From Macrostomum hystrix (taxonomy: Eukaryota > Animalia > Platyhelminthes), in assembly GCA_950097015.1 (NCBI GenBank), contig CATNEN010000011.1, forward strand, positions 4,402,001 to 4,466,000: a stretch of DNA of 64,000 bases, given 5' to 3'. The notes beneath the pieces are model-generated. The model made no database searches and had not been told where the DNA came from. It saw only the letters and a list, made by a program, of their open reading frames with translations. A program made the translations under genes and the position numbers. Shown in pieces: positions 1 through 56,921 of the stretch (its first letter is position 1; every line of letters begins with the position of its first letter).

Positions 1-284
1 CCCGAAACGTCAGCAGATGCATCTTCATAACCATCAAAGCAGATAGGGCTGCTTACTCTCGGAACATGTGCACATTGCGCAGCTTCAGTCTGAAGTCCTT
101 CTTGAAACTGTTCTAGTGTCAAGGGCACTTGAAAATCTTCATTTGGCCCAGAAGCAGGGTGGACAAACAGTTTGTCCTCTTCACTAGAGCTTGACAATGA
201 TGCGTCTCGCTTGCAACGCTTTGATTTTCTGGCGATAGAATATGTGTGCCTTGTGCCACGAAGGGATTGCTTTTTCTTCCGCGG
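1..284 (-). CDS. Probable first coding exon (N-terminus) of an EnSpm/CMC-like transposase, running off the window start
   Basis: Open frame after a TTTTCAG acceptor (AG at 286-285): PRKKKQSLRGTRHTYSIARKSKRCKRDASLSSSSEED...RVSSPICFDG. The basic, then Ser/acidic N-terminus resembles that of the transposase starting at 56047 (MPKRLVNKTRRYKKHK...SSSSEQ...NTSSPIPFD). No catalytic motif lies inside the window. Confidence 0.45.
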
Positions 285-1907
285 CTGAAAAAAGAAGGGA
301 GATATTTAAAGTTTGATTTATTAATACATAATACATTCATGATTTCCCCAGGATGTGCATAGTAATGCAAATGCATAGCATTTACCTGACATAAAATTTT
401 TTATTAGCACATAGTTGTAAACCTATATGCCCATTGCCCACTTAGAAACCCAAAATCATCTTAGCATTCAATGTACCCTAAAATTTTAATATACAATTTT
501 AATTAAAACCTCTATCTGTTACTTGCCTAAACCCTATATGTAAGCAACTTACAATCTGCATGCCCAGCAGCCCTGCAATAAAATGTTATGCACTTATAAT
601 TTTGAGATTAAATGTGCTTCTAAATGTAAAGCTTATTGTAGTCAACTGATAAGCATACAAGGCATATTATTATACCCCTCTAAAGTTAAAGATTAGTACT
701 AACTACATTTGACTCAAACGTATAAACATGGAATAGGCTACTCTATCATCATTGCATATGAAATAAGTAGTCAAAAGCAACTGCTTATATATGACAAGCA
801 TAGAAGAATTGAAATTGTCATTACAAAGGGCTGTACGATTTACACTCTGTAATGAGAAAAACAAAAAAGCAAAGGACACAAAAAAGCAACATACATTAGA
901 AAAGCTGAATTATTGAAAATGAAATGCTTTATTCCTACATACAAAACAAAGTTAATTAATCAAGCTTTATTAAAGAGTACACATTCTGCATGAATGCACT
1001 TTATATTGACATTTTTGTGAGAAACAAGGTTGAATTAAAAATACTATTACATTAATGCAAATTTTAAATGAGCAAAGAACTTAGTAAAATGGTCATGAGA
1101 GGATGTCAAGAGGCTATAGCTATTGCATTGAAGAGTATAATTGAAAAGTAAATTTGAAACACATTTCATAGATTCTATATATTAGATGGCACTTATTAGA
1201 AGTCAATGACATTTTTTATTTTAAAGTGCTTTAAAATAATGATTTTATTGAAAATTGATATTTTGCATTGCAGTTTCGCTATGGATATAAGACAAAAGCA
1301 TAGTTGCAACTTTTAAATTGAAAAAAATGAATAGCGCAAGTTCTATTGAAAACAAAATAGCATAAAAACTGCTGCACATGGCAGCATGTGGTAAACCATT
1401 CCAACAAGCACTTAACTTGAAGAGCATTGCAAATAAAAATGGAAAAGTGAATAAAAATGTACTTGTTTAGCAAATGTGCACAATATGCACTAAATTGAAA
1501 AAAACTTGTAAGTCATCATGAAATATTTCTTATTAGGGATTTCACATGTTTTAAATGTCAAATAAAATTTTAAAAGACAATTTGGCAAGCACTAAATATA
1601 AAACCCACAATAATCTATAGACAAACCCAATCCCTACAACTAAGCATATGTAAATATGCACAGCAATATAGATTGAGTCTATCATATTGCTATTATGGTA
1701 TACATTTTTATAATAGACCAGAGCCTAGTGCAACAAAACATGCTCCAATATCAAGTCTGTGCACTTCATAAAATGTTATAATGTTATAATGAAAAATGTT
1801 ATAATTCAAAGACAGCTTCAAGTATGATAAAACATTTTATATAGGCCATAGTGATTAAAAGTCTTGAAGAATCAGCAGTTGTTGAAAATGTAGACAATGC
1901 TAGACAA

Positions 1908-2957
1908 TTAGCCAATGCTTGGAATTTGGAAGTCATCCTTCCTAGAACGAATTCCTCGTCGTAGATCATTGCCAAGCTGGTTTATAGCATCCCGAGCAGC
2001 AACAATAGCAACTTCATCATTGAAGCGAAGCCTGCAGGCTTGAATGACCATATTACTCCGAACTGGGCTTAGAGCTGGCCGTGAAGTTTTAGTTTGCTTG
2101 CGTGGACAAAGAAGTCCTTGCTTTAGCTCATTATCATTCCATAATTTCCTCGCAATCAGGATCCCATACTCAGAAGGTGATAGATTGTTTGGACCAATGC
2201 GAACTAAATCAATGTCTTGAAACAAAACTGGCTCAACATTTGATATCTCAGTAGTCACAGATGAGCTTGATGCAGCATGGCCCTTTCCTAGTCCAAGCCG
2301 AAGCTTTCGTAGCTCTTGAACAATCTTCTTCTGGGTTGTCTGCTGGCGTTTAACTGCCATAAGAAGTTCCTTGTTGGTTCTGTTCAGCTTTTGGAGTTCT
2401 TGAATAATACTAGATTTCTGATCATCATGTTCTATTCTAGTGGCAGATAGCTCATTACTCTCAGTGGGTTGATCATCCTCTGAGCTGCTTGACTCAGACT
2501 CAGAGCCTATAGTCATAGATGCCAGCGTATAGCCTCTAGTTAGTATACCATTATCACTGTCATTGTCAACTGCATTGTCATCAATCTGATTATTTTCCAA
2601 TGTTGAGTCATTCAATGTTGAGTCAAGAGCTCCCAGGGACCTGTTAGCTAGAGCTCCAGTTTTTTGGCGATCATCAATTCTCTTGTCCAATTTCTTCTGC
2701 AGAGCCTTAGCTTCATCTAAGGTATGAGCTGTGCCCATCACATGACCTTGAATTCCATTCTTCAATTTCAGAATAGTCTTCTTTTCTAGCTTAGTAAGAT
2801 CTGTATCACGCAAATCACCTAGCAAAGTTGAATATGATGCTAGGCATGAAAATTGTTCTTCTTCTTTAAAGTATACAATGACATATGTGATAGGAGTACT
2901 ATCTTCACTCAGTAGCCTAGATGGATTTAAAGACTTCCGTCTAGTAGAAGAAGACAT
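1908..2957 (-). CDS. Transposon accessory protein, 349 aa: N-terminal beta-rich domain, acidic linker, coiled coil, C-terminal BEN-like domain
   Basis: C-terminal SEYGILIARKLWNDNELKQG..SRPALSPVRSNMVIQAC..AINQLG matches the BEN pattern and aligns with ORFs 52228-53220 and 45557-46516. N-terminal YVIVYFKEEEQF motif is shared with the other accessory ORFs. Confidence 0.8.
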   Translation of the reverse strand: MSSSTRRKSLNPSRLLSEDSTPITYVIVYFKEEEQFSCLASYSTLLGDLRDTDLTKLEKKTILKLKNGIQGHVMGTAHTLDEAKALQKKLDKRIDDRQKTGALANRSLGALDSTLNDSTLENNQIDDNAVDNDSDNGILTRGYTLASMTIGSESESSSSEDDQPTESNELSATRIEHDDQKSSIIQELQKLNRTNKELLMAVKRQQTTQKKIVQELRKLRLGLGKGHAASSSSVTTEISNVEPVLFQDIDLVRIGPNNLSPSEYGILIARKLWNDNELKQGLLCPRKQTKTSRPALSPVRSNMVIQACRLRFNDEVAIVAARDAINQLGNDLRRGIRSRKDDFQIPSIG

Positions 2958-3364: not shown

Positions 3365-3669
3365 AAATTTGTATTAAAATTATTACCAATTGTTAGCATT
3401 AATATAGTTGTAAATATGGTAGGCTCATTATGAAACAGATTAGAACACAATAAGAGTAATTTAGTTACAACATTGTATGACTTTCTGGTGTTCAATGCTA
3501 CTGTAAAGTTCAAGTTGTAATACTCTCTCTCGAACAAATTCTAGACCTAGTCATTCTAACTGAAGGCTAATATAAATCTAAAAAGCTAGGCCAAACTAGC
3601 AAATCAAAGGCTTTTATAATATGTTTGATATTTGCCAAATCACTTGTTTTCTTTAAATCTTATAAAATT
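3365..3669 (+). repeat. 305-bp direct repeat, copy 1 (flank duplication around the Gypsy element)
   Basis: AAATTTGTATT...CTTATAAAATT, repeated at 7942-8246 with no differences seen by eye. AT-rich, no TG..CA ends. Confidence 0.95.
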
Positions 3670-3859
3670 TGTGGTCTAATGTATTTGTGTAGATAGCAAA
3701 GCCCGGGGTTACCACGAAAGCTAGAGCCGCAAACACTCTTAACGCGGTCCTCGCAAACAAACAGGTAGAACGAATTGTCTATGGGATATTTAGCTGCAAC
3801 GGTCAAATACTAGTTTCTATATAATGAAAGTACAACACATATAAAAGTACAACACATCA
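3670..3859 (-). repeat. 3' LTR (190 bp) of the Gypsy element
   Basis: Minus strand reads TGATGTG...AGACCACA and is immediately preceded by polypurine tract AGGGGG (3860-3865), just downstream of the pol stop. Confidence 0.85.
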
Positions 3860-3885
3860 CCCCCTGATCTCCGGATCACAAGAGA

Positions 3886-6800
3886 TCAAGGTTCGTAACG
3901 GACCGGTGCCGACTTCACCCTATTAGACCGTCGTGGTTCGGCATCCCGCTCGACAGCTCGCTCCACCCCAGGAGGCTGCGGTTGCGTGTCTGGTGCCGGG
4001 CGGACGTCAGCTACGTGACGGGGAAGGCCATCGACCTCCACCGTAGACCCTTGTCCCTGGCCCGTCACGCGTCCCCTAGGCCACTCGTCGGTGCATCTGA
4101 CGGCCGGCGGTTTAACAAACACTTCTGTTCCCACTGGCAGGGTGGGGTTTGCCTCCAAGGTCTCCAAGGCCTCAGGGAGAGACACAGTTGGCGGCTTCCA
4201 GTCATAGGTGCTGACCATTCTGCTGGGCACGCTGTCCTTGCGAGTGCCATCCTTTGGAGCCATGTTGTACCAGAACACCATTTCCAGTACGTCCTTTCCG
4301 GTTCTGGCTGCCATCCGCTTAATCGTCCGATGATTGCGCTCGACTATTCCGTTGCCTGACGGCCGGTGAGCGCAACGGAAGAGGAGCTGCACTCCCCAAG
4401 CCTCACAAAACGCACGGACCTCAGCGGAGCGGAAGGTCGGTGAATTGTCGAGAAGCAGCTGCCAGGGAGGGCCCCGCTCTCGGAACACCTGCACGAGTAT
4501 CCCGGTAATTGACGCTGTCCGCTCGTCGGTGAGTTTTCGCCACAGCGAGAATCTGCTCGGCCCGCAGTCAACAATGGACAGATAGCGGTCGTCCTTAAAG
4601 TGGGTCACGTCGCAGGCCAAGCGCCACCAGTTTGCATCCACCTCGAGTCTGCCATGGTCCCAAACCATCGGCGCAGGGTCTACGGACTTGCATCGGATGC
4701 AGTTTGCAACGATGCGCTCAACCTCTTCACGCAGTACCTCACGTTCAGGGAAGCACAGTTTGGCCAGGTAGAGCGTCCTGTCCACCCCGAAGTGGTGCTT
4801 CTCGTGGCACGCACGGAGATCCATGTCAACGGGGCGCAGCGCCACTGCACAGAAGGGCCGCTGGCGCAGCCACTGTTGCGGTACTCGCGTCAGTGCGTCT
4901 GCCTTGTTTGCTGAAGATGGCACCAGCGATGTCAGTAGCTCGAGCTCGCACTCCGACGCCGTGTCTCGGATTAATGATAGCCGTTTCCGAACCAGAGCTT
5001 CACCGAGACCTTTGACTCGCACGGGCTTATCGCCGACAATCAAAGACTGGAGCCAGCCGTGCACGGTTGCAGAATCAGTCAACACTTCAACTTTCCTCGT
5101 GCCCCAAGCGAGGGCAAGGTTGAGACCCTTAATGACCGCCTCAAGTTCGGCAAGATTGATGTGCGCAGCGTCGTCTTGTTTTCGCAACCACGAGGCGTCC
5201 TCCACGATTACGCCACCAATTTCGATGACGGCTCCAATGGCGATGCTGCTGGCGTCGCACCAGACGCGACAGCTCGAAGTCTCGTCAACGGTCCACACCC
5301 CAGCGACAGGATCTCGTTCCTGGACCATTCCGCTGATTTCTTGGGCGATCCGCATGGCAGACTCGCTGACGATAGCGTCCCACGCGATTGTGCTGGTGAC
5401 CCGCTTCAAGTAGCTGCATGCGACACGCAGCCATGCGGCGACGGGGAAATGGCCTACTAGCTGGCCGCACCAGGAGAATAGTTGCCGTCGTGTTGCTGGA
5501 CCTTTCAACTGAGAGAGGACATTGTCTCGTTTCCAGCAAATGACCCCATCCTCTCGACGGTAGACGCGGAGGCCGAGCACGCGGCCCCCAATGAGGCTCT
5601 CAGGAGGCTTGGCTTCTAGCCCGAACCGGGCAAGCAACCCAGTTACGCGTTCATTCGGAATCTTGCTATTGTTCACAATAATGTCGTCAATGTAAGAGTC
5701 CGTGGCCTCACGCACGTCGTCTTCCATCGACAGGACTTTGTTCACAACCGCCGTCATAATTTTTGGCGCCACGTTGAGTCCGAATCCTAACCGGGTGAGA
5801 CAGTAACGGCGGCCTTTGAACCTCACTACTTGGTAGCGCCAGAGACTGGGGTCCAATCGCAGTTGTAGGTAGGCCTTCCGCAGGTCGATGATACTCGCAT
5901 TCTCACCGAGCCGCCGCCAGGCCCGGAGCTTGGCGCCGCACACGACGCTTTCGGCGGTGTGGCTTGACACGTACTGGTTCAACTCGCGATAGTCGAGTAC
6001 AGGCCGCACCTTTGCTTTGTTGGTCTGCACCACTGCCATCAGAGGGATGACGCCGTCACTGTCACCTTCGAACGGTAGCAGCCAACCTCGCTGAATCCAG
6101 TCTTTTATCTCTGACTCATACTCGCCTACCGCCTCTGGTGGGACTCGGTATTGAGCTATCGTATTTGACAGTAGTGGGGCCTCATCCAGCCACTTCCATG
6201 CCACTGTCCACTCTCCATCGATAAACTTAGCAGAGAAGTCTTTTTCCTCAAGCACCAGGCACGCCTCGGTTAAAGTATTTTTCGCAAGCCTCGCTCCTCT
6301 TGCCGGACAGCTCACAGGTGACTCGACCTCTCCTGCCGGACAGCTCACAGGTGACTCGACCTCTCCTGCCGGACAGCTCACAGGTGACTCGACCTCTCCT
6401 GCCGGACAGCTCACAGGTGACTCGACCTCTCCTGCCGGACAGCTCACAGGTGACTCGACCTCTCCTGCCGGACAGCTCACAGGTGACTCGACCTCTCCTG
6501 CCGGACAGCTCACAGGTGACTCGACCTCTCCTGCCGGACAGCTCACAGGTGACTCGACCTCTCCTGCCGGACAGCTCACAGGTGACTCGACCTCTCCTGC
6601 CGGACAGCTCACAGGTGACTCGACCTCTTCTGCCGGACAGCTCACAGGTGACTCGACCTCTCCTGCCGGACAGCTCACAGGTGACTCGACCTCTCCTGCC
6701 GGACAGCTCACAGGTGACTCGACCTCTCCTGCCGGACAGCTCACAGGTGACTCCGCCTTTGGTTTTGAGAAAGCCTTGGCTACCGCAGCAGTCTCCAGCG

Positions 6801-7209
6801 CTAATGACTGCTCTTCAATACCGAAGCGGACACTGCGGCAATCTCGCTTCACAGAGACACCGCCCAATCGGCTGATGGCATCCATCCCAAGCAGCAAATC
6901 GAACCCAGGAAGGATGTCCATAACGATACATCGCAGCACTGGTAATTGGTGGCCTCGAACAGACAAAGTAACGTCAGCCTCCCATTCACATTCTGCTGAG
7001 TCACCATTCATCATCGTGACCCTCTCGTGAACGGGACGTTTTTTAACTCCAGTAACTCGTGAAGAAACGATGGACCGCGAACAACCAGTATCTACTAAAG
7101 CAGTAACGACCAAACTATTAACATGAACACTTAACGATTGTAGGTGCGCCGGTGCACAAGGAAGCCCGTTGGCGCAAACATTCCGCGCTTCCATCACTCG
7201 TTTTTTTTT
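3886..7209 (-). CDS. pol: Gypsy Pol polyprotein (aspartic protease, RT, RNase H, integrase)
   Basis: Protease LVDTGC; RT RPVLDYRELN, DLRKAYLQ, YIDD; RNase H WCDAS, ELEA, LTDS; integrase H-H-C-C zinc motif, CDVTHF, LLDNSP, GIVERNHRTIK. Frame is open. Confidence 0.95.
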   Translation of the reverse strand, partial: KKKRVMEARNVCANGLPCAPAHLQSLSVHVNSLVVTALVDTGCSRSIVSSRVTGVKKRPVHERVTMMNGDSAECEWEADVTLSVRGHQLPVLRCIVMDILPGFDLLLGMDAISRLGGVSVKRDCRSVRFGIEEQSLALETAAVAKAFSKPKAESPVSCPAGEVESPVSCPAGEVESPVSCPAGEVESPVSCPAEEVESPVSCPAGEVESPVSCPAGEVESPVSCPAGEVESPVSCPAGEVESPVSCPAGEVESPVSCPAGEVESPVSCPAGEVESPVSCPAGEVESPVSCPAGEVESPVSCPARGARLAKNTLTEACLVLEEKDFSAKFIDGEWTVAWKWLDEAPLLSNTIAQYRVPPEAVGEYESEIKDWIQRGWLLPFEGDSDGVIPLMAVVQTNKAKVRPVLDYRELNQYVSSHTAESVVCGAKLRAWRRLGENASIIDLRKAYLQLRLDPSLWRYQVVRFKGRRYCLTRLGFGLNVAPKIMTAVVNKVLSMEDDVREATDSYIDDIIVNNSKIPNERVTGLLARFGLEAKPPESLIGGRVLGLRVYRREDGVICWKRDNVLSQLKGPATRRQLFSWCGQLVGHFPVAAWLRVACSYLKRVTSTIAWDAIVSESAMRIAQEISGMVQERDPVAGVWTVDETSSCRVWCDASSIAIGAVIEIGGVIVEDASWLRKQDDAAHINLAELEAVIKGLNLALAWGTRKVEVLTDSATVHGWLQSLIVGDKPVRVKGLGEALVRKRLSLIRDTASECELELLTSLVPSSANKADALTRVPQQWLRQRPFCAVALRPVDMDLRACHEKHHFGVDRTLYLAKLCFPEREVLREEVERIVANCIRCKSVDPAPMVWDHGRLEVDANWWRLACDVTHFKDDRYLSIVDCGPSRFSLWRKLTDERTASITGILVQVFRERGPPWQLLLDNSPTFRSAEVRAFCEAWGVQLLFRCAHRPSGNGIVERNHRTIKRMAARTGKDVLEMVFWYNMAPKDGTRKDSVPSRMVSTYDWKPPTVSLPEALETLEANPTLPVGTEVFVKPPAVRCTDEWPRGRVTGQGQGSTVEVDGLPRHVADVRPAPDTQPQPPGVERAVERDAEPRRSNRVKSAPVRYEP
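6301..6752 (-). repeat. In-frame 33-bp minisatellite (about 14 copies) in pol, encoding (ESPVSCPAGEV)n
   Basis: Plus-strand unit TGCCGGACAGCTCACAGGTGACTCGACCTCTCC starts every 33 bp from 6301 to 6730. Confidence 0.97.
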
Positions 7210-7906
7210 GAAAATCGGCGCGCTGCGGGCATCGAGCAGCCACATGTCCCGCTTTTCCACAAACAAAACAACCTTGATTCGCTCGGTTGCGTTCCATGCA
7301 CTCTTTGCTCACATGGCCCTCCTTGCCGCACGAGTAGCACGACATCACTTTGTTGCGTGGGGCGAACTTTCCAGCGCTTCGCGCATTTCCTGCGCTCGAG
7401 ACAACACAGCAGGACTCGCGACTGATCGTTAAGTTTCTAGCTTTCTCCGCTAGTTCATGGAGTTCGAGCTCTTTTAGAGAGCAGGAAGCGATCAGCTGCT
7501 GACTGACGGTTGCTGGAAGCCCGCGGACGAATGCGCATTTGATCCATTCTTCCCCGGGGATCTCGTCCACTAGGCGTGCAAGCCTCGTGAGATCCGCGAG
7601 AAAAACGTCCACGGACTCCCCGGGGCCGAGCCTGCGTGACACGAACTCGTCGTATGCTTTGTACTTGTTTGGGCAGAACGCTGAGGTAAGAGCCGCTTTC
7701 AGAGTTTTGTAGTCCGACTTGCTTTCCTCGTTTAGTGCCTGGTACACGGCGAACGCACCTCCAGATAGAAATAGTGGGATGAAAGCAGCCAGGTCATTCA
7801 CTTTTTGGAGCTTGGCAACGAGTTCGAGCTTCTGTGCCCAGCGCGAAAAATCCTCTTCACCGTCGTACTGCTTGATTATGTCGCTGAATTTGACTGCGCT
7901 TGCCAT
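7118..7906 (-). CDS. gag: Gypsy Gag (262 aa)
   Basis: Two zinc knuckles, CYSCGKEGHVSKEC and CFVCGKAGHVAARC; lies upstream of and overlaps pol. Confidence 0.92.
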   Translation of the reverse strand: MASAVKFSDIIKQYDGEEDFSRWAQKLELVAKLQKVNDLAAFIPLFLSGGAFAVYQALNEESKSDYKTLKAALTSAFCPNKYKAYDEFVSRRLGPGESVDVFLADLTRLARLVDEIPGEEWIKCAFVRGLPATVSQQLIASCSLKELELHELAEKARNLTISRESCCVVSSAGNARSAGKFAPRNKVMSCYSCGKEGHVSKECMERNRANQGCFVCGKAGHVAARCPQRADFQKKTSDGSAECLRQRASLCTGAPTIVKCSC

Positions 7907-7941
7907 CGTTGCGTATTGCCGCGATAGCTTGTGTTTGTATT

Positions 7942-8246
7942 AAATTTGTATTAAAATTATTACCAATTGTTAGCATTAATATAGTTGTAAATATGGTAGG
8001 CTCATTATGAAACAGATTAGAACACAATAAGAGTAATTTAGTTACAACATTGTATGACTTTCTGGTGTTCAATGCTACTGTAAAGTTCAAGTTGTAATAC
8101 TCTCTCTCGAACAAATTCTAGACCTAGTCATTCTAACTGAAGGCTAATATAAATCTAAAAAGCTAGGCCAAACTAGCAAATCAAAGGCTTTTATAATATG
8201 TTTGATATTTGCCAAATCACTTGTTTTCTTTAAATCTTATAAAATT
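7942..8246 (+). repeat. 305-bp direct repeat, copy 2
   Basis: Matches 3365-3669. Confidence 0.95.
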
Positions 8247-10965: not shown

Positions 10966-11740
10966 TATGGGAAACTTTCAAAGTACATTCAAGTAGTCTT
11001 GAGATGCCAACATTGGAAACTTTCAAAGTGCATCCAAGTAGAAATGAAAGGGTCCAACATTGAAAACTTTCAAAGTACATTCAAGTGAGATGCCAACATT
11101 GGAAACTTTCAAAGTACGTTCAAGTAGGCTTGAGATGCCAAAATTGGAAACTTTCAAAGTACATCCAAGTAGAAAAAAGGGTCCAACATTGAAAACTTTT
11201 AAAGTACATTCAAGTAGTCTTGAGATGCCAACATTGGAAACTTTCAAAGTGCACCCAAGTAGAAAAAAAGGGTCCAACATTGAAAACTTTCAAAGTACAT
11301 TCAAGTGAGATGCCAACATTGGAAACTTTCAAAGTACATCCAAGTAGAAATGAAAGGGTCCAACATTGAAAACTTTCAAAGTACATTCAAGTGAGATGCC
11401 AACATTGGAAACTTTCAAAGTACATTCAAGTGAGATGCCAACATTGGAAACTTTCAAAGTACGTTCAAGTAGGCTTGAGATGCCAACATTGGAAACTTTC
11501 AAAGTACATCCAAGTAAACATTAAAGGGTCCAACATTGAAAACTTTCAAAGCACATTCAAATAGTCTTGAGATGCCAACATTGGAAACTTTCAAAGTGCA
11601 TCCAAGTAGAAATGAAAGGGTCCAACATTGAAAACTTTTAAAGTACATTCAAGTAGTCTTGAGATGCCAACATTGGAAACTTTCAAAGTGCATCCAAGTA
11701 GACATTAAAGGGTCCAACATTGAAAACTTTTAAAGTACAG
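10966..11740. repeat. Minisatellite, about 18 units of 39-47 bp with core CCAACATTG(G/A)AAACTTT(C/T)AAAGT
   Basis: Recurring unit variants (GAGATGCC-type and AAAGGGTCC-type). Each unit contains the interrupted palindrome ACTTT-N-AAAGT. Confidence 0.95.
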
Positions 11741-11799
11741 AAATATTTACATGACACAACCACAAATAACATTTGACATTTTTATATGTATAGCCATAC

Positions 11800-11995
11800 A
11801 CGACAAACTTGCCAAGTACTTGCAAAGTATTAGGCATTATGAATCATTGAATACTTTTCAAGTCGACTAAAGTATATTCATTCATGAGAAACTTTCAAAG
11901 TACTTTATATATAGACAGTTTAAACTTTTAAAGTCAATTCATGTACGAAGTACCATTGCTGACTTGGAAAGTTTACAATGTTTTTTTTTCCCGGG
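11800..11995. mobile_element. Right terminus of an EnSpm/CMC-like element (element D) with ACTT-N3-AAGT subterminal repeats
   Basis: Ends TTTTTTTTTCCCGGG, like the ends at 44280 and 56622. Preceded by ACTTGCCAAGT, ACTTGCAAAGT, ACTTTTCAAGT, ACTTTCAAAGT, ACTTGGAAAGT. Partner end not in window. Confidence 0.7.
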
Positions 11996-12044
11996 AAGTA
12001 CATTTTTCACAGTATCTGAAAATATTAATAAATATTTGGCCCAA

Positions 12045-12320
12045 CTAACGTTTAGAAGCGCACATACAAAAAGACACAAATAGAAATGCCACGCCTTGCA
12101 AGCCATTGGTCAGCTTGAGGATGCTTTTTCGCTGCAGTCCAGTCAAGTCTGAACCTTGAATTGACTTGGGTAGCAATCCTGACGTTGATGGTAAAGTTGT
12201 GTAGGATGCGTCTTCCTTAAAGTAGATGAGACACAAAGGACACTCTACTGTTAGGAGCCTCGAAATTGTGCACCTGGCTTGAAGGACGACACAAACGCTT
12301 TGGTGCAGGGCTGGAGTCCA
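12045..12320 (-). pseudogene. Truncated N-terminus of a BEN-type accessory gene
   Basis: MDSSPAPKRL..RVSFV/LIYFKEDASY..DLTGLQRKSILKLTNGLQG aligns with 1908-2957 (YVIVYFKEEEQF..DLTKLEKKTILKLKNGIQG). One-base frameshift near 12235; cut off next to the 11995 terminus. Confidence 0.75.
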
Positions 12321-32830: not shown

Positions 32831-32842
32831 ACCTCTGCCTGC

Positions 32843-40214: not shown

Positions 40215-40917
40215 TGAGTCACTGCAACAAGATTACTGAACTAAAGTTTTATTATTTAATGATTTAGCAACTGCACAAGACACTGCATGTACTAAGAAGG
40301 ACTATTTACTCATTGTGGTGTAATGTTGGCCAAGCAGTAACTAAAGTTTTTACAGCATAATATGGCACATAACATGTAATTATTCCATTGGAACAAGTGA
40401 GTTACAAATTTAGAGGATACACAAAAAATGTTTATTGAATTGTTCATAGGGGCCTATTGCTACTTGCTAACTTACTAGTAGACAACTTGTCAAAATACAT
40501 TTACACTAGAATTCTGCCACAAAAATCATAAATAGTCTGACTAGGACATTCACATTGAAGGACACATTACTTAAATAATACGTACTCATATTTGCAAGCA
40601 CTTAGGAAGGTTATAATAAAGCATAGAAATTATACAAAACAATAATAATTGTTTTTTGTAATAAAATTAATTAATAATAATAATAAAAATAATAATGATC
40701 ATCTTATTTCATACCATGATCCGAACAAATGCTTTAGTTTGTTAATGGCTATAATGGCTATACTACTTCAATATTATATAATATATATATGGAATTATAT
40801 ATTTTTTTATTCTAGACCTAATTAAATTATATTTGCTGACTGTATACACAATTACATTTGTAAACAACTTAGGCAAGACACAATTATGGACGATGGACTT
40901 CAGGCAAATAACTTGAT

Positions 40918-45556: not shown

Positions 45557-46516
45557 TTACTGGCCAATATCGCCACCACGCTGTCGTTTGCCTTGCTTTA
45601 TGTCATTGCCCAGTTGGTTGACGGCTGCGGTGGCTTCCAGGAGCATGTCCGGGTCATTTCGGAATCGGGCTTTGCAGGCTCTCAACCAGATGGCCTGACG
45701 CTCGGCATCAAGAGCAGGCCGGCCGCGTCGTCGCCTGCTGACTCCGAGTCTGCCGTTCTTGATCTCCTCGTCCGACCACAGCAGGCGAGCAGCTTCAAGG
45801 CCAAAAAGTGAAGGCGTGGAATTCCTGCCAGCACAATCCAACAGGTTTTGGCCGTTGAACACAGGCTCGAGATTGCCAATCTAGACTAGTTCGGCACCAG
45901 TCGTCTTCGGCTTGTTGGCACGCTTCAGCTCGCGAAAAATTGCGGCCAGAAGCTTTTCCTGCGCCGCGTTCTGCTGCACGATCTTTTTTAGCAGTTTCTC
46001 AGTAATCGCCGAGGTCAAGCTAGGAGTTTCGCTTGGTGTGGCAGCAGCAGCTTGAGCATGTGGCGCAGTGTCATCGCCGTTATTGCTCAGCGATGAGGCC
46101 GATGAAGTTGCCTCAAAGGGCGACTGCGGCCTGGAAGCTGGTGCTTCTTTAGAAAGACTCTGCTCAGCCAGGTTGTTGTTGCTTTCTTCCAAGACAACAG
46201 AGTCACTTCGCTGTAGAAAGCCGAAGCTTTCGTCACGGATATTGATTGGGCCGCGCTTCAGCTTATTTTCGAATCTGAGGAGCAGCTTCTCGATGTCAGC
46301 CTTATCATCGCCAGTTGCAACAACAGTTGCAGTGCTGCCATCTCGCAACGTCACACTCTGCTTTGGGCTTAGTCGTCGCGCGTTTGTATTGCACTTAAAA
46401 AACGATGAAGACGACGGCAGCAGCTCATACTTCTGCTCGCTCTCCCAAAAGAGGAGGATATAGCAGACAGACGATTCTGGCAGGCGACTCGAGGTTGGGG
46501 CCTGCGCTCGCTTCAT
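45557..46516 (-). pseudogene. BEN-type accessory gene with a single premature TAG (45881-45883)
   Basis: The ORFs 45881-46516 and 45557-45862 are in the same frame. The joined product aligns end to end with 52228-53220. Confidence 0.88.
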
Positions 46517-47651
46517 CAGAAGGCTGTAAAGGAAATAACTGAGAGGTTATTCAGAGTCTCGAACTTAAAATCTTACAAACTTGCTAAATTAAAAGCAACA
46601 ACTAAGATATGGATACATATGGATACATAAGATATGGAGCATTTACTCCAAACAGGGCGAACAGCTAGCCAGGCAAACGTGTGCCAACAAACAGACGAAC
46701 ACTCCTTGTTGAACGCCATAAGTAATACTATGCATTGTATGATTAGTGTATGCTGATAAACGAAAATATGAAGACATCATAAACGTGCACCATAAATCAT
46801 AAGATTATCCTAGTTATTCTCATTATATCGAAGTACACTATAAATAATAAAGCACACCCATCAGCCACAAACATAGACATAAACGACGCATACATATTGT
46901 TCAGAAAATACATACATGTTATATTGGAGTAACAGCAACTTACAATATTTCTAATACTAATAAAAAAGCCGGAAATGCCGCCAGTAATAAAATATGATTC
47001 CTTAGCTAAGTTAAACTTACATTGGTCCTGCTAACACTTGAAATTTAATTGTCTCAGAAACAATGCTTTCAGCTCTACTCAAATCAAATTACCTGCACAG
47101 AAACACCACGAGCACCATACGATGTTGATAGAGAAGGAAGCAAACGGCGAAGTGGAATAGCTGCTAAATTACAGCATTGGTACATTATATACAGTATAAC
47201 ATACAATATAGCATTTGCTTCGTTGGCAATATGCAGCTGCTTCTGCTACTTTGCTACTACTGACTATTATTCTGCAGCTTTTGTTAACATGGACAGGCTG
47301 CCCGCGGAGCGAGGACCAGGAGTGCTGGTGGTAGAATGATGAAGTTGAGGTTGCCGTGGATCGGAAACAGCAGATGTTTAAGGAGTAACGGACCGCCAGG
47401 GAAGGCGAGAAGGGGGAGATGCAGTTTGACTTCAGACTGACGATAGGTACGATTGAAGCCACCTTTGGAGAGGTTCGACTGTTTCTGCTATTCTATTGCT
47501 TATTTTACTGTCACAATAGCAGGAGTAGCGGAAGCATTAGGAGGAATGTGTAGTAGCAGAAAAAATGACTGCATTAGCAGGAATTAAGATGCAGTAGGAG
47601 CACGAGTCGTAGCATAACAATAGACAAAAATAGGTGGCTCGAAGTAGGCAC

Positions 47652-47830
47652 TTAATCGTGCTCAAAGTAGGCAGCCACTGGAACTGCAAAAAGCGTACTG
47701 GCACCTGGAAGTGCTTTGCACAGAATTGAAATAAAATGGTTCGCAAGTGTGTTGCACTTCAACACGCACGAACTGCCATCGGAAAGAATTGCACAAGTTG
47801 GCACTGTCTGAAGCAGATGGCGCACGTTGT
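47652..47830 (-). pseudogene. C-terminal remnant of the element A transposase
   Basis: CVLKCNTLANHFISILC..FAVPVAAYFEHD* aligns with CLIKCSTLINYFVSVKC..FAIPVVSDFEHD* at 53700. Confidence 0.8.
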
Positions 47831-50825
47831 CCGGTAGCGAAGCGCCCTCTGGGAACGTCGCGAGCAAATCACTAGCGAATCGCCGGCGAGGTTCGCTGGC
47901 GAATCGCAGCAGGTGATGTCCGCGCGAATCACCGGCGAATCGCTGACGATGCTTCGCTGGCGACAATCGCCAGCATTTCGTTCAAAATTCGCTTATTCTT
48001 TACAGTACTTTGTAATGAAATTTCGCATGACGACATCGCGGAATTAATTTCTGAGCCGTTTCCAAGCTTTCTTCGAGCTTTCTAAGATTTAGAATTCTCT
48101 TTCTAGAATTTTAATGAGACAAGGCTCAGTATATGCATCTTTTATAATAAATAAACATTGGGGTTAGCATACATTCTTCCACTTTCCTAAAAATGAAATG
48201 TTTCTTCTCTTGCTAATTGCTTAGGTTGCAATCACAGAGCCGTTACATAAACAAGTGGCGATTTGAAGTGGCAATCGACCAATCGTCTAGTGACGTCGGT
48301 AGATTTAGGCCCGGCCACAGCTGCTTATAAAATATTATGACCCTCAATTGTTGCAATGATCGAATTTCATGAACGAAAATTACGGACGTACAGATATAAA
48401 ATGAGAATTTAGAAAGGACAGTAGCTGCAAAAGGCAAAAAGTTTAGTTTATTACAGTCTATTGAAGACAAATAAAAAAGAAGCTAGCGATTGTTTGGCGC
48501 AATTGTTAGCTTATTAATATCGTCTATTTGAAGCTATGGCAAATTGAGCGAATTGCTAAAATGAATTTGTGAGAACTACAGACAAAATAATAAATTAACT
48601 ACTGTAAGAAAAAAAATTGACCTGATCGCCATCACGCATCAGTACGTAACTGTTAACGTGGCAAAAAATGAATCATTATTCACAAAGATTAGCTAACATC
48701 GCACTCATGACTCGTGCTTCTAAACAGAGTTAAAAAAATAAATCGTGACAATTATAAGTATTGCGACATTGTCACAGGTATAACAGATTTTTCGGAAATT
48801 TTTCCCATATAGAAAATTGGTCCGGTCAGGAATTTGATAAAAGTAAGTCTCACTTACTATTTGACCTTTCGAAAATTAATAATAATTGCGATGTTCGAGA
48901 GCAAGAGAGGTCAGTTTGAATGGCGACTATTAATTGTGTGTGGGAGGGCGATTTATGAGAGTGGAAGCTGTGATTATTTGGGGCTGGACTGTGACTGGAC
49001 ACAATATTTTTCTGGGACTTGGATGGTCTGGCATGAACATCATTTACTTTAACACTTTAAGTTTGCGTCACGATTCAGAATTTGCGGGTAAATTTAATAC
49101 TCGTAATTAATCTGATCCAATAATTGTATCACTGCATTATCGAATTCAATCGTCATCTGGCAAACATACAAAATCGTCTGTTAACTGAATGCCTAGCTTG
49201 CTTAACCAAAAATCGCCCTTAAAGTTTGTTAAAGCTGAATTACAAACACAATAATTAATACTCGTAAACTATGTGACGGATGTATACATATACACGGAAA
49301 GTGAAAACAGATTGCGTTCGTTCTTAGACAGAATCATTATCTATAACGGGCACAACAAAATATTCGCCTTGACGAGGGACGCAGATACAGGGCTGCAATG
49401 GCCTGCCAGAAACTATCCTTCTAGACAATTGATAAAAACCTATTCCTAGGGCACGCGAGTCGAATGGTACAGTATAAAGGCTACGCGCAAAATTAAGAAG
49501 AGTGCCTTTAATGACACCGTTATCATAACTTTTGACTCTAACAATCATACCATTATCCAGCAATGCACAATTGTTAGGAGAATCGCAAGAATAGGTTACA
49601 GAAGCTTTGCATTGATCGATATGCGCATTCCGCATGTTAAGCAACTGATTTACGGCTCTTTTGAAAGCGTGACGTCCGCCTGTTATTCGTCTTTTGAGTA
49701 CGCCAAGAAAATTTTCAAATTGAAATGCTGAAAAGCGATCTAAGCATCCAAGCCGTCTAGAATATTCTGACAAATGTAATAGGCAATGAACATTATAGGA
49801 AACTGCATGAGTACCATAGAGTCCAGCAAACTGAGAAACGAAAATTCGTAAGCATGCTTCTGCAGCCTCATGGTGCACCGAAAGTCTCTCCGAACACAAG
49901 CAATAAATTGCAAAGTGAAGGTGCAGAAAATGATTAAAGTATGCAAGTTGGAGTTCGCGATGAAAAATGTGAACTGCTGCGTACAAAAGCAGGGTTCGAA
50001 ATTCTGCCGCCTTAAAATTTCTTATTTCCGCAAAGGTGCGCAGCTTCCGGCAAAAAACAGTAGGTATATACTTAGAAAATTCATTCGCTGCTAAAGACAT
50101 GGTGTCAATTTGGGCTTGAGCAAGACGGCAAGCAAGGTGCCTTCCTTTTTCGGGTAGAAAAAACAGAAAACAAATTTTCCGCATAACACCAAGCAGCACA
50201 AGATGCATATATTCTGGTGGGAAACTAGATCGCAGAGGCACAATTGAAACTAGAGGAGAGAGGCCATTCTGATTGTTTTCTAAGTTGTTTGCATAGGAAG
50301 CGTCCGACCGAATTGGGCTGCCGGTTCCAACAAAAGCAACGCGATTAGAGTGATATTCTCCTTTTTGTTGGCAGTAGCCACACCCATAGTAACCCGTGTG
50401 GGACTTAATGCACTGAAGGAACGCACGGGCAGGAGCATCACAAACAAACACTATTTTAGCTAGACAAAAGCTGCAATTCTGTAGAATGAACATTTCATGT
50501 CTTTGAAGATCTGAGATCATATCCAGCAGGGGCACGATCAATTTTTGAAGGTCCGGTTTTCCGAGTCCAGCATACAATCCTAATGGGAAAGGTCCCTCAT
50601 TGTTAATGAGCACTAGTATAGGCCAGAGACCATAGTTGGAGCCAGAAAAAAAGTGGCAGACCGTCTACGTTAATTAAAAGAGTTAGAGGAATTATATGCC
50701 TAGCAAGGTTGTAGGACTTGAATGCTCCCTTTCTTAAAAGCAGACTGATGGTCTCCGTGAAAGAAAAATGGGCGTACTTGGAGTGGCTTACTTCGACGCT
50801 GTGGGCGACTCCATCAGGTTCCTCA
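47830..50825 (-). mobile_element. Left part of EnSpm/CMC-like element C, inserted into the element A transposase
   Basis: Starts TCCGGTAGC followed by GCGAATCGC-type repeats (47875-47975). Contains a transposase of the 20011/40918 type and degraded accessory-gene remnants (e.g. 48243-48330). Confidence 0.65.
49324..50825 (-). pseudogene. EnSpm/CMC-like transposase, N-terminally truncated, one frameshift near 50620
   Basis: INVDGLPLF, VCDAPAR, CGYC, PEYMH, FKAAE, AFQFEN motifs. Cut at the terminus starting at 50826. Confidence 0.88.
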
Positions 50826-52227
50826 CCCGGATAAAAAAAACATACCACACTTACTAAGACTTAATAAGTCATGTGCTTTAAACTTAGTAAGTACTTGGAA
50901 GTACTTACCAACTACTTAATAAGACTTTATAAGTCAAGTAAGTTTTAGGTACATCTTACTAAGTTTAGAGTATAACTTAATAAGTCATTGTAAGTCTTCT
51001 AAGCATTAGCCGCATCTTACTAAGTTTATGTGTAAAACTTAATAATATTAATCACGCACTTTGTACATGTAGAGACAGGTCATAGGTGTCAGGCGAAGAG
51101 CTAAACAATATTAATTTATAATGGCAATGTGCATGCAGTTTAAAGTATCTCTGCCCGTGATTGAAGGCGGCTATATGCCCATCGAACAGGATCAGATAAG
51201 ATTATGAGTAAATATAGGCAAAAACTCCAGAAATTATCTTCTTAAATGGTTTTCTGTATAGGCTTCATTGACTTTAATTATACTTACTGACTCCAATGCA
51301 CATTGAAGCAACCCAATCGGCAGTCGCAGGTAACAAGAAAAAACTTCGTGGAAAATATTTCGGCAGTTTTTAATCCAAAGTAAATAGCACTGGACTGTCC
51401 ATTGGACACGAGCAGAATAAATAAAATGCTAAATGTATTTCCTTTTTGACGACAAAGTTGGCAAATAATAAGTTTAAAGTAAGTTAAGTAAACAGTACAG
51501 TTAAAAAATACAAAATGCAGGCAGACTGAGCCAGGGAATTCTGGCATAGAATGCGAGTGACAGGAAATGTATTTAATGGAAATCGTTTGGAAATCTAGTA
51601 TATCATGTCTATATTGCCCAAAAGTAGAGTACCGAAGTTCAAAAACTGTCACGGGCATTGGTATAAGAATACAATCTCTTGTAGGGGCTACATGGAGGGC
51701 GATTTGGGGAGAGGGAGAGGGTGGAAGGGTGATTGTTGGGGAGAGGGTTGGTGGAGGTGTTAGAGTTGGAGGTCAATTCTGCACGATCATCTCAACCACC
51801 TTACCTCAGAGATTTTGTGTATTCAGATTTAACTTTACTGGGGCCACTGGCAGCTAGATACGTCACAAGAAGCTTTTTTGGAAGAAAAACCATTATGCGA
51901 AAGTTTGCGGACAGTTTCACATATAGATATAAAGCGATGCATAACATCTCGCCCAAAATGAACCATTGTAGAAAAAATCGATTACAGTACTATAAATCAG
52001 TTAACTCGTAATTTTGACATTTATGATCTATTTAGCATCATGCGATTGGCATAAATCTACAAACATTTCATTCAAATTTAATTTGGAATATAGGTTTTTT
52101 ATTTGTCCTACTTAACATGATTATGTGACAAAAGCCCAGCACACAAATCAAGCAAGAAGACAGTCATTAATTAAAGAAGCCAGTTTTCACAAAAAGATGA
52201 CTACATACAAAAGGGTGGTTCACACAG

Positions 52228-53220
52228 TTAGACAGCAGGATTCTTGTTGAGATGACGCACTCGCCGGTTATTTTTGATGTCCAGTCCTAGCTGGTTCACG
52301 GCCTGAGTTGCTTCATCGAGCATGTCTTCGTCGTCTCCAAACCTCTGCTTACAAGCCTGTAACCAAATACGTTGCCTGTCCTCGTCAAGGGCTTGTCTGC
52401 CTGTGTTCCGTTTGCAAGCGCCGATCCGACCAGCCTTCAATTCATCATCGGTCCAAAGACACCGAGCAACCTCAATTCCGAACATTGAAGCGGGGGCATT
52501 TCGCCGAACGCATTGCATTAGATCTTTTCCATCAAATAAAAGTGGCGTGGAGTCAACAGACTCGGGCACTGAGGCAGAAACAGCTACGCGACCTTTCAGA
52601 GCCAGCTTGTTTGCTTTCTTCAATTCCTTCAGAATTCCTGACAAAGTTTTATTCATCTCTTTATTCTGCCTCACTTGCACCCTAAGCAGATGAACTTGTA
52701 ACTCGGATTTGCTGGCGCCGACACTCTGAGACAGTGAGGCATTTTGCAAAGAAGGATCTGTATGCTCAACTTCATGCGCAACCTCATGTTCACTGTCACT
52801 GCTACTACCACTGTCATCATTTCCATTATCTTCAATGATGGACGATCCACATTCTGCAGCTTGATTTTGCTCGCGGGCCTCTTCAGCACCAAGCAACTGC
52901 GAATTTTGTGTAGCATTCAAAAATCCCATGCTGTCCGAAGATATGTTAAGGCGACCATTAGCGAGGCGCTTTTCAAGACGGATCAGTAACTTCTGCATAT
53001 CAGCAGGGTCAGGGCCAATCGCAATCACTTTAGCCACAGAAGAATCCCGCAACATCACAACATCGTTTTCAGCCAAATTCTGAGGATTCGAACCTGTCTT
53101 GAAGTACAGAGAGGAGGATGGAAGCAGCTCGTATTTCTGTTCTGCCTCCCAGAACAAAAGAATGTAGCGCACTGTCATGAGCTCGAATCGATTGGGCCTC
53201 TGTTTTGATTGGCTGGACAT
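52228..53220 (-). CDS. BEN-type accessory protein, 330 aa, intact
   Basis: YILLFWEAEQKYELLP N-terminal motif; C-terminal SMFGIEVARCLWTDDELKAG..GRQALDEDRQRIWLQAC..AVNQLG. Confidence 0.85.
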   Translation of the reverse strand: MSSQSKQRPNRFELMTVRYILLFWEAEQKYELLPSSSLYFKTGSNPQNLAENDVVMLRDSSVAKVIAIGPDPADMQKLLIRLEKRLANGRLNISSDSMGFLNATQNSQLLGAEEAREQNQAAECGSSIIEDNGNDDSGSSSDSEHEVAHEVEHTDPSLQNASLSQSVGASKSELQVHLLRVQVRQNKEMNKTLSGILKELKKANKLALKGRVAVSASVPESVDSTPLLFDGKDLMQCVRRNAPASMFGIEVARCLWTDDELKAGRIGACKRNTGRQALDEDRQRIWLQACKQRFGDDEDMLDEATQAVNQLGLDIKNNRRVRHLNKNPAV

Positions 53221-53699
53221 TCGCTGAAATTAGTCAGTAGAAGCAGATAGTAAGTGGCTGCAATGCGTATTTTGTCTCTAAACATGCAGTTGCACAAGGT
53301 TAGTGAAAATTAAAATTTTAGGACACAAAACAAGTTACAGGGAAATTTAGGATTAAATATCCATATGATAAAAACCTATGTCTCCAATTGAGCATTTCAG
53401 GCAACTTTCTGAACTGAGCTGCTGCATTTACAAAGCTTAATACTTGATCATTATTAACTGAATTATATTACCTTTTCATTGATAGCTTATAACCATAAGA
53501 AACTGATTATCAACGAATATAATACAAAGCAAATACTCTATAGGTAGCTAAAAGCTGAAATGGTGTCTAAACATCCAATAAAAGAAAAGCTATATGCATA
53601 TATTAGACAGTAGTCAGCAAATTGATTGAAAACACAATTTTGGGGCACAGGCATTGACTTTTAAATTTGTCAGTTCATTACATAAATTCATTGAATTAA

Positions 53700-56047
53700 T
53701 TAATCATGCTCAAAATCAGACACAACAGGAATAGCAAAATGGCTTTTTGTCTTAGAACACTTAACTGAAACAAAATAATTAATCAAGGTACTACACTTGA
53801 TAAGACATTGGCTTCTAGGAGTTATCATTGCCACTTGAGAATATGCTAACAACTCATTGTAGAATAGATCAGAAGAGTTAAGAAACATCTTGATAGCAGG
53901 TTGGCTGTCATATTGTTCCACCATACAATGGAAACCATTATTAAGAAGAAATATTTGCTTAATGTAAACAAATTTTGGACTCTGAAGACCATAAAATGCA
54001 AAGGAATATGATGTTCCATGGTTCTTTTGATCATTTTTGTCTATCTTAAACATTTTGCCATTGACAATGACAGCACTAAACTCCATATTGACATCTTCTT
54101 TGTATGTTGGCTTGTGTAGCTGATTCTTTAGGAAGGCTGTAACTCCATCTTTGTCCTTTATACAAGGCTTATCACTTCTAGTCTTAGTCTGCTGTGCAAT
54201 AACATTGGAATGGAAACGGAGAAATCGCCGAATAATAATTTTGGCCTCATCTTTGGATCCAGTGACAAATTTAGTTAGCTTTCCATAAAAACTTTCGAAG
54301 CTAAAGGCAGAATGAGTCCACAATGGCCCAAATTGCACTACTTGGTCAGGCAGATGGCAAAGTGCATGAAGTGAAAAAGTCATCGATCCAGGCCCAAACT
54401 CCTGTTTTATAATTGTCTGAAAACCATGAATCAATGTAGCAGCAATTTTGATATGTCTTTCTTCTACACATGATATGATGATAGCAAATTGATTGCAGCT
54501 GACAAAAGTGCATATGATGTGATGATTGGCACAGAATTGCAATTGCAATATACAACTGGGAGACAGAAGTATAATAAGAATGATTTCCATTCATTTGCTT
54601 TCCATCTTGCAATGTGTTGCAATCCTCTTGGACCACGTTTGAAACTAGTAGGAACCACAATTTGAGTACAAAGTTGAACTGATGCAGTTGATTCAAACAA
54701 GATATTTTACTTAATAAAAAAGTTGTTAGGGTTTTGGTTATACCCAGGTAGACTAAATGCATGATATCAAAAGGAGCAGCAATAGGAATGGGTAAGACTT
54801 TAGCTAATGGTGTTATTCCTTTTACTCCATACTTTGGACTTTTATCACTTCCCATCTGCATGTGCCTTGCGTGTGATTTCACATCACGTAATTCTGCCGA
54901 TTCTATTGGATAGGTCATCTTCCTAAATTCTTTGAGGTAAGTTCCTTTGGCTTTACAAAAGTTGCATCCAAAATAGCCATTGAAGGCTAACATCCGTAAG
55001 CATGCTGCCTTGGCTGGCAAGTCTGCTACAAAGCCAATAACCTTCAAATGAACAGGATGGCCAGATAATTCAAGAACAAAGGCATTAAGTTGCAAAGCTA
55101 CTTCATTCATGAATTCCTCAAATATAGGTTTCGTTTCACCATAACATGGCCAAGATAATATTCTCAAACCTTTGTCTAAACATTGGAGCTAGGTTGATAG
55201 GAATTGGAGTTATAGGCCAAATGGAAAATCCTTTAGACTTTTGAGCAGGTACAACACCATCACAACTAAGAAGACAATAAAGAACATTAGCAGATTCAGG
55301 TTGCTTCATAGATAGAAAAAACTGTCCATCAAGAATGTCACAAATGCCATTGGATGTTTTCCTTCTTTCAGGTAGTCTAAGGATGTCAGGAAACCTTTCT
55401 AGAAGCATTTGAATTTGCTTAGCCAAATCTAGAATAAGATAATGACCACCATTAGACGCTTTCTTTGCTTCAACATCAGTCATAAAGTCATCTAATTCTG
55501 ACCTTTTGAGTTGATACAATGTAGGGCACTTGTTAGGCATAGGCAGTGTAGTAGCAAATAGCTCAAGAATATCTTTTAGTCCAGCATCAGAGATCCCATT
55601 CTTTGTAGCAATTCTTAGAATATTGGCCTTGAAAGTTTCTACACCAATATCAGCATCTTTATATAGTTCATTATCCAAAAGACTTGAAGATGATGATGTT
55701 GAGTCTAATTGATTGCTGTTCACTTCAAAGTGCTCCACATTGTCAAATGGAATTGGTGATGATGTATTACGTGGTCTAAACTCAATTCCATGAGCCAAGG
55801 AAGAACTTGCCATTTCAACATCATGGGCCATAGATAAATTAGGATCATTGATAGGTCGGACATGGCATGGCACTGTCATCACACTAGCCATAGAAATCAT
55901 TAACATCAATGAACTAGTGCTTAGGTTGCCACTTTGTTCGCTAGAACTTGTACTATCTTTAGACTCAGGCTTTGAAGCCTTATATTTATGCTTTACATGC
56001 TTATGCTTTTTATAGCGCCTTGTTTTATTCACTAGTCTTTTGGGCAT
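53700..56047 (-). pseudogene. EnSpm/CMC-like transposase of element B with three frameshifts
   Basis: LSCDGV..SIWPI, VADLPAKA, CNFC, FDIMH, WKANE, AFSFES, FEHD* motifs. Frame changes near 55140, 54700 and 54480 (could partly be sequencing errors). Confidence 0.87.
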
Positions 56048-56921
56048 CTTGAGTCTAGAAAAGAAAAGAGATAATGTCATTTCTTTATATTTTTTTGTCA
56101 ACAAAAAGTTCAATTACATAATTTACTTTACATTTGTCAGCAGTGTTATATGTGTGTTTTATGTGTGAGCAGTGAAAATTTTGATAATCCAAAAACGGTG
56201 CAAATATTTGCCACGATTGTTCAATCTCATTTGCAATTAGAATGGATGGTGCGATCATATCTGCAAATTTTAATTTTATTTAGCGAAAATCTGTACGCTA
56301 TATACAAGATGAATGACGATGTACATTAAAATTTTATTGGCTACTGCCGGCACTTGACAAATTTAAGCAGAGCCGCGTCGTCACCTTGCGAAACTTATAG
56401 TAACCATGCAGTTACAAAAACTTAAGTAACTTTATTCCTATAAACTTGCAAACTTAGTAAGTTAAGAAGCATTCCTATAAGCCTATAAGCTTGCCAAAAT
56501 TAGTAAGCACTTACGAAAACTTACTAAGTTAAGAAGCATTCCATAAGCTTAGTTAGTTTAGTACGTCCTTAGCATAGCACTTTTAAGTCTTACTAAGGGT
56601 AGAATAATTTTCTTTCCCGGGGCATCACTTATAAGTCTTAGTGGACTTAATAAAGCTGTAGATGCTCTACATTTTTATTAAGTAAACCGTAAAGTAACAA
56701 GAGCTATTAGTTGTGACATAGTCATAGAGAACACGTAGTTGACATAACATAAATAGTAAGATCTCTGGCTTAGCAGTAAACTCAGGAACTATGAGATAAT
56801 TGAAAAACTCAAGCCCAACGTGGGCAATGAACAGTGACCATGAGAATATGCAAAGCTTTTTGTTGATAGCGTTAAGCCGTTAAGCAATCAACTGCAAGAG
56901 TATTTTAATTAAAAAATTACC

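Follow-up and report, generated by a model that had tools for sequence, protein, structure and literature searches.

To our knowledge, plant En/Spm and PIF/Harbinger are the only two-protein DNA transposons that are well understood, and an accessory end-binding protein of animal CACTA-type elements has been proposed (SmTRC1) without ever being assigned a fold. In this study, we analysed a stretch of 64,000 nucleotides (nt) from the flatworm Macrostomum hystrix (contig CATNEN010000011.1 of assembly GCA_950097015.1, positions 4,402,001 to 4,466,000; hereafter the window), which consists of AT-rich, transposon-filled DNA and carries several elements with a CACTA-Mirage-Chapaev (CMC) transposase gene and a second, partner gene. 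We consider it fairly probable that these are two-gene CMC (CACTA/Mirage-like) cut-and-paste transposons whose partner, a BEN-family protein comparable to TnpA or to the Myb-like protein of Harbinger, would bind and read arrays of short motifs in the element ends.

The transposase of plant En/Spm (TnpD plus TnpA) belongs to the same superfamily as those of the window elements. As reported, its second element-encoded protein recognizes subterminal repeats that are cis-determinants of transposition, and accessory proteins and motifs vary by family (PMC2613891, PMC1636069); the likeness of the window elements extends to a putative binding of this kind. However, TnpA has no BEN domain and arises by alternative splicing of one transcription unit, whereas in the window a gene of its own, downstream of the transposase, encodes the partner, the partner mRNA receives a host leader by trans-splicing, and the target-site duplication (TSD) is TA in the window elements and 3 bp in En/Spm. 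Similarly, cut-and-paste transposition of PIF/Harbinger in animals (Harbinger3_DR) depends on two proteins encoded by the element, of which the Myb-like product of its first open reading frame (ORF1) binds a short subterminal motif and interacts with the transposase (PMC9710019, PMC2836001). In contrast to the window elements, its transposase comes from another superfamily, and the fold of its accessory protein is Myb/SANT, not BEN. Among flatworms, the CACTA-type element SmTRC1 of Schistosoma mansoni has inverted ends with a CCC core, and its second ORF, SmTRC-PrA, was proposed by the authors as a TnpA analogue (PMC1636069); SmTRC-PrA, however, results from alternative splicing and has no recognised domain, and we set it beside the partners by description only. 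Additionally, host BEN-solo factors (Insv, Elba/Bsg25A, BEND5/6, BANP, LIN-14) have a C-terminal BEN fold in common with the modelled partner of element D in the window (Z about 8), and short DNA targets are bound in their solved complexes. They differ in being host transcription or insulator factors rather than transposon genes, and their sequence similarity to the partners is undetectable by Pfam or hidden Markov model (HMM) search. In the searchable literature, we found no paper linking BEN domains with CMC elements.

Based on their termini, E2 (16447-24260, minus strand) and E4 (36829-43920, minus strand) are complete CMC-type elements with CCC-type inverted ends. E2 starts with CCCAGTGAACAGC... 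and closes with an imperfect inverse of it (CCCAGTG.../...CACCGGG), with TA on either flank as the target duplication, while E4 is bounded by GCCCCACTAAAAA... and its inverse, likewise within a TA duplication. Both show the terminal inverted repeats, 2-5 bp TSD and CCC/CACTA-like core by which such elements are recognized (PMC12730594, PMC1636069), and a CCC core in the ends of animal CACTA elements was noted earlier (PMC1636069). Element D (50826-56622, minus strand) has a degenerate left terminus, a right terminus that is the inverse of GCCCCGGGAAAGAAAATTAT, and six ACTT-N3-AAGT sites. In E2, E4, and D, a co-oriented partner gene lies 742, 704, and 480 nt, respectively, downstream of the transposase stop and within the inverted ends, which bears out the description of these elements as two-gene units in an earlier, sequence-only reading of this DNA.

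Six CMC-like transposase ORFs or fragments, all on the minus strand, were located in the window by tblastn. The transposases of E2 (T2, 20011-21990, 659 residues) and E4 (T4, 40918-42828, 636 residues) are intact, and RNA contigs cover T2 without an intron. The D transposase (T6, 53700-56113) is frameshifted across three overlapping frames and matches DUF1258 (5.5e-6) and Transposase_21 (0.0047). Element 1 carries T1 (13667-15810; ORF 14368-15810), a member of a divergent CMC clade with DGxPLF, CDxxA, and CxxC that is 25-28% identical to T2 and T4. T5 (49324-50797), the 5'-truncated transposase of 'element C', falls into the T2/T4 clade, and the T3 fragments (26289-27573), found by tblastn, match DUF4218 (E 5.7e-5). 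T2, T4, and T5 are 34-42% identical to one another, with T1, T3, and T6 more distant at 22-30% (tblastn). In the alignment of T2, T4, T5, and T1, the motifs DGxPLF, CDxPAR, CxxC, HxxxH, and FPFEN are present, the T1 ORF lacking the last part. The CACTA-Mirage-Chapaev group is defined by a DDE core with C(2)C and H(3-4)H (PMC12730594), and the alignment displays these motifs. Additionally, the Pfam scores of DUF1258 (26.5 bits), DUF4218 (23.4 bits), and Transposase_21 (16.6 bits) lie under the gathering cut-off and are concordant across paralogs. Judged by their sequences, the transposases encoded by the window elements are CMC DDE transposases with the CxxC and HxxxH hallmarks.

The partner of element D (52228-53220, minus strand, 330 residues) is intact. 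Its AlphaFold2 (AF2) model, folded with five homologous rows, comprises a beta-rich Tudor-like barrel (residues 15-90), a disordered segment (94-168), a long helix (171-209), and a helical C-domain with a BEN fold (222-320), in which the predicted local distance difference test (pLDDT) score is 85-93. The top 11 Foldseek matches of this model are all BEN domains (BEND6, Insv, BANP, NACC1, Bsg25A), and the best 12 rows of the VIA comparison are likewise all BEN, with Z scores of 7.1-9.0 over 86-99 residues, followed by a next row at Z 5.0. The solved BEN domains in the match list are bound to DNA targets, some of them to methylated DNA. The BEN fold is globular and consists of five helices with a middle loop (PMC10789644), an architecture shown here for the D partner only. 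The sequence-only reading had named a BEN fold of the BEN-type C-domain beforehand as a point on which it could fail, and this fold is what Foldseek and VIA returned; we conclude with high confidence that the modelled C-domain of the D partner has a BEN fold. Its N-domain is similar to Tudor barrels at Z ~5, a value that is suggestive only. The N-domains of both partner families (residues 15-90 of the D partner and 1-63 of P0002, a database relative of the second family described below) separately match the same Tudor-barrel entries, namely ARID4B, RBBP1, and KDM4, at Z ~5, which hints at a shared Tudor-like N-domain that might serve as a chromatin-reading module. The partner layout proposed from the sequence, with a beta-rich N-domain, a disordered linker, a long helix, and a helical C-domain, is seen in both AF2 models.

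The partial elements A, B, and 1 also contain BEN-type partner copies. That of A (1908-2957, minus strand) is an intact ORF of 349 residues, is paralogous to the D partner at 26% identity (E 1e-20), and matches the A1 and A2 profiles. The partner of B (45560-46516, minus strand) is BEN-type and frameshifted. In element 1, an N-domain fragment (12048-12332, minus strand) is 45% identical by tblastn to residues 13-71 of partner A (HMM E 1e-7) and is truncated by the end of element A.

The partners of E2 and E4 form a second family. Reading the splice sites from the sequence, the E2 partner (17297-19269, minus strand) has exons at 19269-18019, 17757-17577, and 17397-17300 with the stop at 17297-17299, and the E4 partner (37704-40214, minus strand) is multi-exon, with its N-domain exon at 39834-40214 and the ends and starts of its last three exons at 38432, 38301-38127, and 37906-37707. 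The two are homologous (exon homology E 1e-5), the E4 partner also being found by HMM, and the positions and phases of two C-domain introns are common to both. Because the C-domain is split over three exons, Pfam was searched exon by exon, and DUF4806 (PF16064) matched the E2 exon at 17566-17781 weakly (E 0.21), as one part of the split domain. In an exhaustive HMMER search, the final 104 residues of E2 exon 1 retrieved nine relatives. Their alignment with the exons of E2 and E4 covers the N-domain, the helix, and the C-domain as well as a conserved GIDPxSxxGHTHLL motif. Against DUF4806, for which the Pfam gathering cut-off is 25 bits, P0009 scores 27.9 bits, and P0002 (24.5), P0007 (22.8), and P0004 (14.5) stay below. 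The DUF4806 assignment made from the sequence held for a full-length relative, P0009, but in the window ORFs it reached only the E=0.21 match on one exon; the E2 and E4 partners are placed in DUF4806 by way of their database relatives. The N-domain in the AF2 model of P0002 has the Tudor matches 2mam and 7dm4. As two papers describe DUF4806 as a BEN subtype (PMC10789644; PMC10723407, which cites Pan et al. 2023), both types of partner probably constitute one superfamily. BEN and DUF4806 clusters also came up at 0.84 in an Atlas feature search, which we take as no more than a lead. In the E2 partner, the disordered linker is encoded by a 39/84-nt tandem repeat of SPALSASSRAPGL units (18425-18780). 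It is precisely in this repeat that 12-15 positions of the RNA contigs disagree with the window, so the expressed copies vary there.

The subterminal motifs were proposed to be terminal and family-specific, and the counts agree. ACTT-N3-AAGT has 34 exact sites in the window against 1.67 expected, all in four terminal clusters (10974-11972, 44303-44427, 50859-50985, and 56452-56529) that correspond to the ends of A, B, and D, the three elements to which this motif had been ascribed. Its 3-nt spacer varies and its half-sites are invariant, a pattern that fits a dimer contacting the half-sites. For E2, the previously noted palindrome CGATTCGA-NN-TCGAATCG occurs exactly twice in the window (0 expected), about 20 nt inside each terminus: as CGATTCGA-CA-TCGAATCG at 16467-16484 on the left, where further TCGAWTCGA copies reach up to 16600, and as CGATTCGA-GC-TCGAATCG at 24223-24240 on the right. 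TCGAWTCGA itself has seven sites (0.19 expected), five of them in the E2 ends. In the E4 ends, TCGGAA (9 versus 0.23 expected) and ATCGGA (7 versus 0.13 expected) are about 40-fold enriched, the ATCGGAW/TCGGAA words clustering in the terminal ~100-300 nt. In the 'element C' remnant, GCGAATCGC is present in three copies (47860-47950). As in En/Spm, where TnpA acts on such repeats, the partner is encoded within the element, and family-specific arrays lie in both subterminal regions.

The CpG-containing motifs (TCGAWTCGA, ATCGGAW) in an AT-rich genome fit a different role for the partner, namely that of an anti-silencing or self-regulatory factor, VANC-like or with the suppressor and activator roles of TnpA, that would change chromatin or methylation via the arrays and be dispensable for cut-and-paste. 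Some solved BEN domains in the match list are complexed with methylated DNA, and TnpA has such dual roles (PMC1636069, PMC2613891); the ACTT-N3-AAGT motif, however, has no CpG, and we regard a partner of this kind as quite unlikely.

The same gene pair was found in diverged families at two other loci, in support of the sequence-only reading. In M. lignano (GCA_002269645.1; L002/L003), a T2-like transposase, 42-56% identical to T2, is followed ~920 nt on by the P0002 gene, in a unit whose TCCCCACTGG... inverted ends enclose GAGGTCGAWTCGA motifs. At L005, an intact transposase of 606 residues has P0004 259 nt downstream and a GTCGAWTCGAC array farther downstream. Based on these loci, the gene pair and the TCGAWTCGA-type motif persist across families of ~35-56% protein identity. 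This recurrence speaks against the view that the partners are host genes, either captured by the element or lying next to it, with no part in its life cycle. BEN and DUF4806 are also known as host genes (PMC10723407), and partner homologs lie on short contigs without a transposase at L001, L004, and L006. In contrast, the partners of E2, E4, and D sit inside the inverted ends, the order and spacing of transposase and partner are repeated in at least five families that are only 35-56% identical, and the E2/E4 intron positions are conserved; the host-gene view is already disfavoured, and we hold it to be very improbable. The contigs at L001, L004, and L006 come from environmental and marine metagenomes.

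Contigs from three metatranscriptome runs match E2 at 99% or more. Near-identical E2 RNA is present in runs X1-X4, which are labelled wastewater metatranscriptomes. Both introns of the E2 partner are confirmed by RNA (joints 17397/17577 and 17755/18017, the second of which may be cut 2 nt further right); read on the minus strand, they have the predicted GT..AG borders, and both joints occur together in one contig. A 22-nt tail attached at 19272 in run X3, 3 nt ahead of the E2 partner ATG, matches nt 13-34 of the M. lignano spliced leader without a mismatch (PMC8629364). This tail recurs at the exon 3 acceptor (17398) in run X8, which suggests alternative trans-splicing to an internal exon. Additionally, a pyrimidine tract plus CAG precedes the ATG within 3-19 nt in five of five partners (19 nt in partner A), and does not precede the ATGs of T2 and T4. 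M. lignano operons are recognized by a leader on the downstream gene and a same-strand gap below 1 kb (PMC8629364), a combination shown here for E2 only; given the leader tail at the partner ATG and the gaps below 1 kb, the data suggest that the E2 transposase and its partner form an operon-like unit. The leader on the E2 partner mRNA indicates that the host trans-splicing machinery processes a transposon gene. Collectively, the RNA-confirmed introns of the E2 partner, the spliced leader at its ATG, and the gene pair at two other loci are new here.

In the mechanism that we propose, the transposase and partner would be expressed as an operon-like unit resolved by spliced-leader trans-splicing, and the partner would dimerize via its long helix. 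Its BEN domains could then read paired half-sites (ACTT/AAGT, TCGA/TCGA) in the subterminal arrays, which would mark the element's own ends and help unite them for the transposase, a role equivalent to that of TnpA in plant En/Spm and of the Myb-like protein in PIF/Harbinger.

Several results weigh against this mechanism or parts of the sequence-only reading, or were negative. The Pfam BEN family (PF10523) matched none of the partner ORFs in the window up to E=10, and the HMMER/Pfam check that the sequence-only reading had proposed thus came out negative for BEN; the C-domain profiles of both partner families gave chance matches only against the sequences of the PDB, and a word-indexed protein search returned one relative for the D partner and zero for the E2 partner. 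In the P0002 model, the DUF4806-type C-domain is too poorly predicted (pLDDT of only 47-77) for its lack of a BEN match in Foldseek and VIA-wide to be informative, and hhalign comparisons of DUF4806-type with BEN-type partners (exon-wise, with full domains from relatives, and between N-domains) revealed no relation, the best reaching E 0.017 at a probability of 2.7%. The HMM search found no partner gene in 'element C' (46.5-49.3 kb) or around the T3 fragments (26-27.5 kb). Within the window, partner A could be matched to no transposase of its own, nor could a gene order be read for element A. The claim that almost every CMC element carries a second co-oriented gene is supported by E2, E4, and D and by the copies in A, B, and 1, but it is too strong because 'element C' and T3 have no detectable partner; for the same reason, 'element C' has the three GCGAATCGC copies ascribed to it but cannot be called DUF4806-type. 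Likewise, the TCGGA motif of E4 is enriched as stated but not palindromic, as ATCGGAW is asymmetric, and the enrichment of ATCGGAW is local, not window-wide. RNA-library contigs do span the intergenic region at 19365-20240, as a polycistronic precursor might, but DNA carry-over could also account for them.

Furthermore, in every case seen, a change of transposase clade goes along with a change of both partner and motif type, and with co-variation this complete the transposase N-terminus could itself be the reader; the sequence-only reading had already raised this caveat for the transposase. The transposase would then recognize the motifs via its unannotated N-terminus of ~200 residues, with the partner employed otherwise, for example in chromatin tethering via the Tudor-like barrel, nuclear import, or repression of its own promoter. 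Motif type indeed follows transposase clade no less closely than it follows partner type (T2, T4, and T5 versus T6 and T1), and the N-domains of both partner families resemble Tudor barrels. However, the only recognizable DNA-binding fold is that of the partner, a Pfam search of the transposase N-termini having found no DNA-binding domain, and the paired half-sites fit a dimeric BEN reader. We therefore regard reading by the transposase as unlikely and favour the partner as the putative reader of the arrays.

With this assignment, the window gives an animal CMC accessory protein a predicted fold, a BEN-family domain, together with predicted cognate motifs for at least three families. Who reads the ends of animal CMC transposons becomes a directly testable question, and the window offers natural protein-motif pairs for studies of BEN specificity. 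The window also suggests that transposons gave rise to some of the numerous orphan BEN/DUF4806 genes, of which Hydra has dozens of copies (PMC7642931). More speculatively, and in our view doubtfully, BEN-family proteins could be dedicated end-recognition subunits of a large animal CMC branch, with a specificity that co-evolves with the arrays; flatworm elements would co-express partner and transposase via the host operon and spliced-leader machinery, and host BEN-solo and DUF4806 factors could be repeated domestications.

Apart from a Gypsy-type long terminal repeat (LTR) element and a long interspersed nuclear element (LINE), every long ORF of the window lies on the minus strand, and tblastn sorts these ORFs into two sets. 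The right end of element A (10970-11997) holds 23 ACTT-N3-AAGT sites, mostly in a 45-nt tandem array, and terminates in TCCCGGGAAAAAAAAA. Element B (44278-46560, end approximate, minus strand) keeps nothing but its left end, with terminus GCCCCGGGAAAAAAATTAT and five ACTT-N3-AAGT sites, and its frameshifted partner. The 'element C' remnant (46561-50825, minus strand) lies between B and D and consists of T5 and the GCGAATCGC copies. No nucleotide similarity was detected among the window elements except between the left ends of B and D. The possibility that the left end of B and the right end of D are the two ends of one element was rejected, given that arrays and a degenerate left end of D itself are present at 50826.

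Two retrotransposons fall outside the main subject. The Gypsy-type element is inserted in element A at 3365-8241, with 300-nt LTRs that are 100% identical, and its pol ORF contains 13.8 copies of a near-perfect 33-nt tandem repeat (6297-6753); the LINE occupies 31271-36547. At the left edge of the window, a minus-strand ORF (1-310) extends past the window start, and its start codon could come from a leader such as that of M. lignano, which ends in ATG (PMC8629364). Directly downstream of the T3 fragments, five copies of the 20-nt unit GAGACTGGACTCGGATCGGC are followed by 2.4 copies of a 168-nt unit (25513-26001), and these repeats may be the end array of another family. Finally, beyond the right end of element D, further arrays with AAGTAACTTCCGG units and 61-nt and 22/42-nt repeats are found at 56938-57060, 58528-58617, 59534-59943, and 62073-62465, which probably belong to other transposons.

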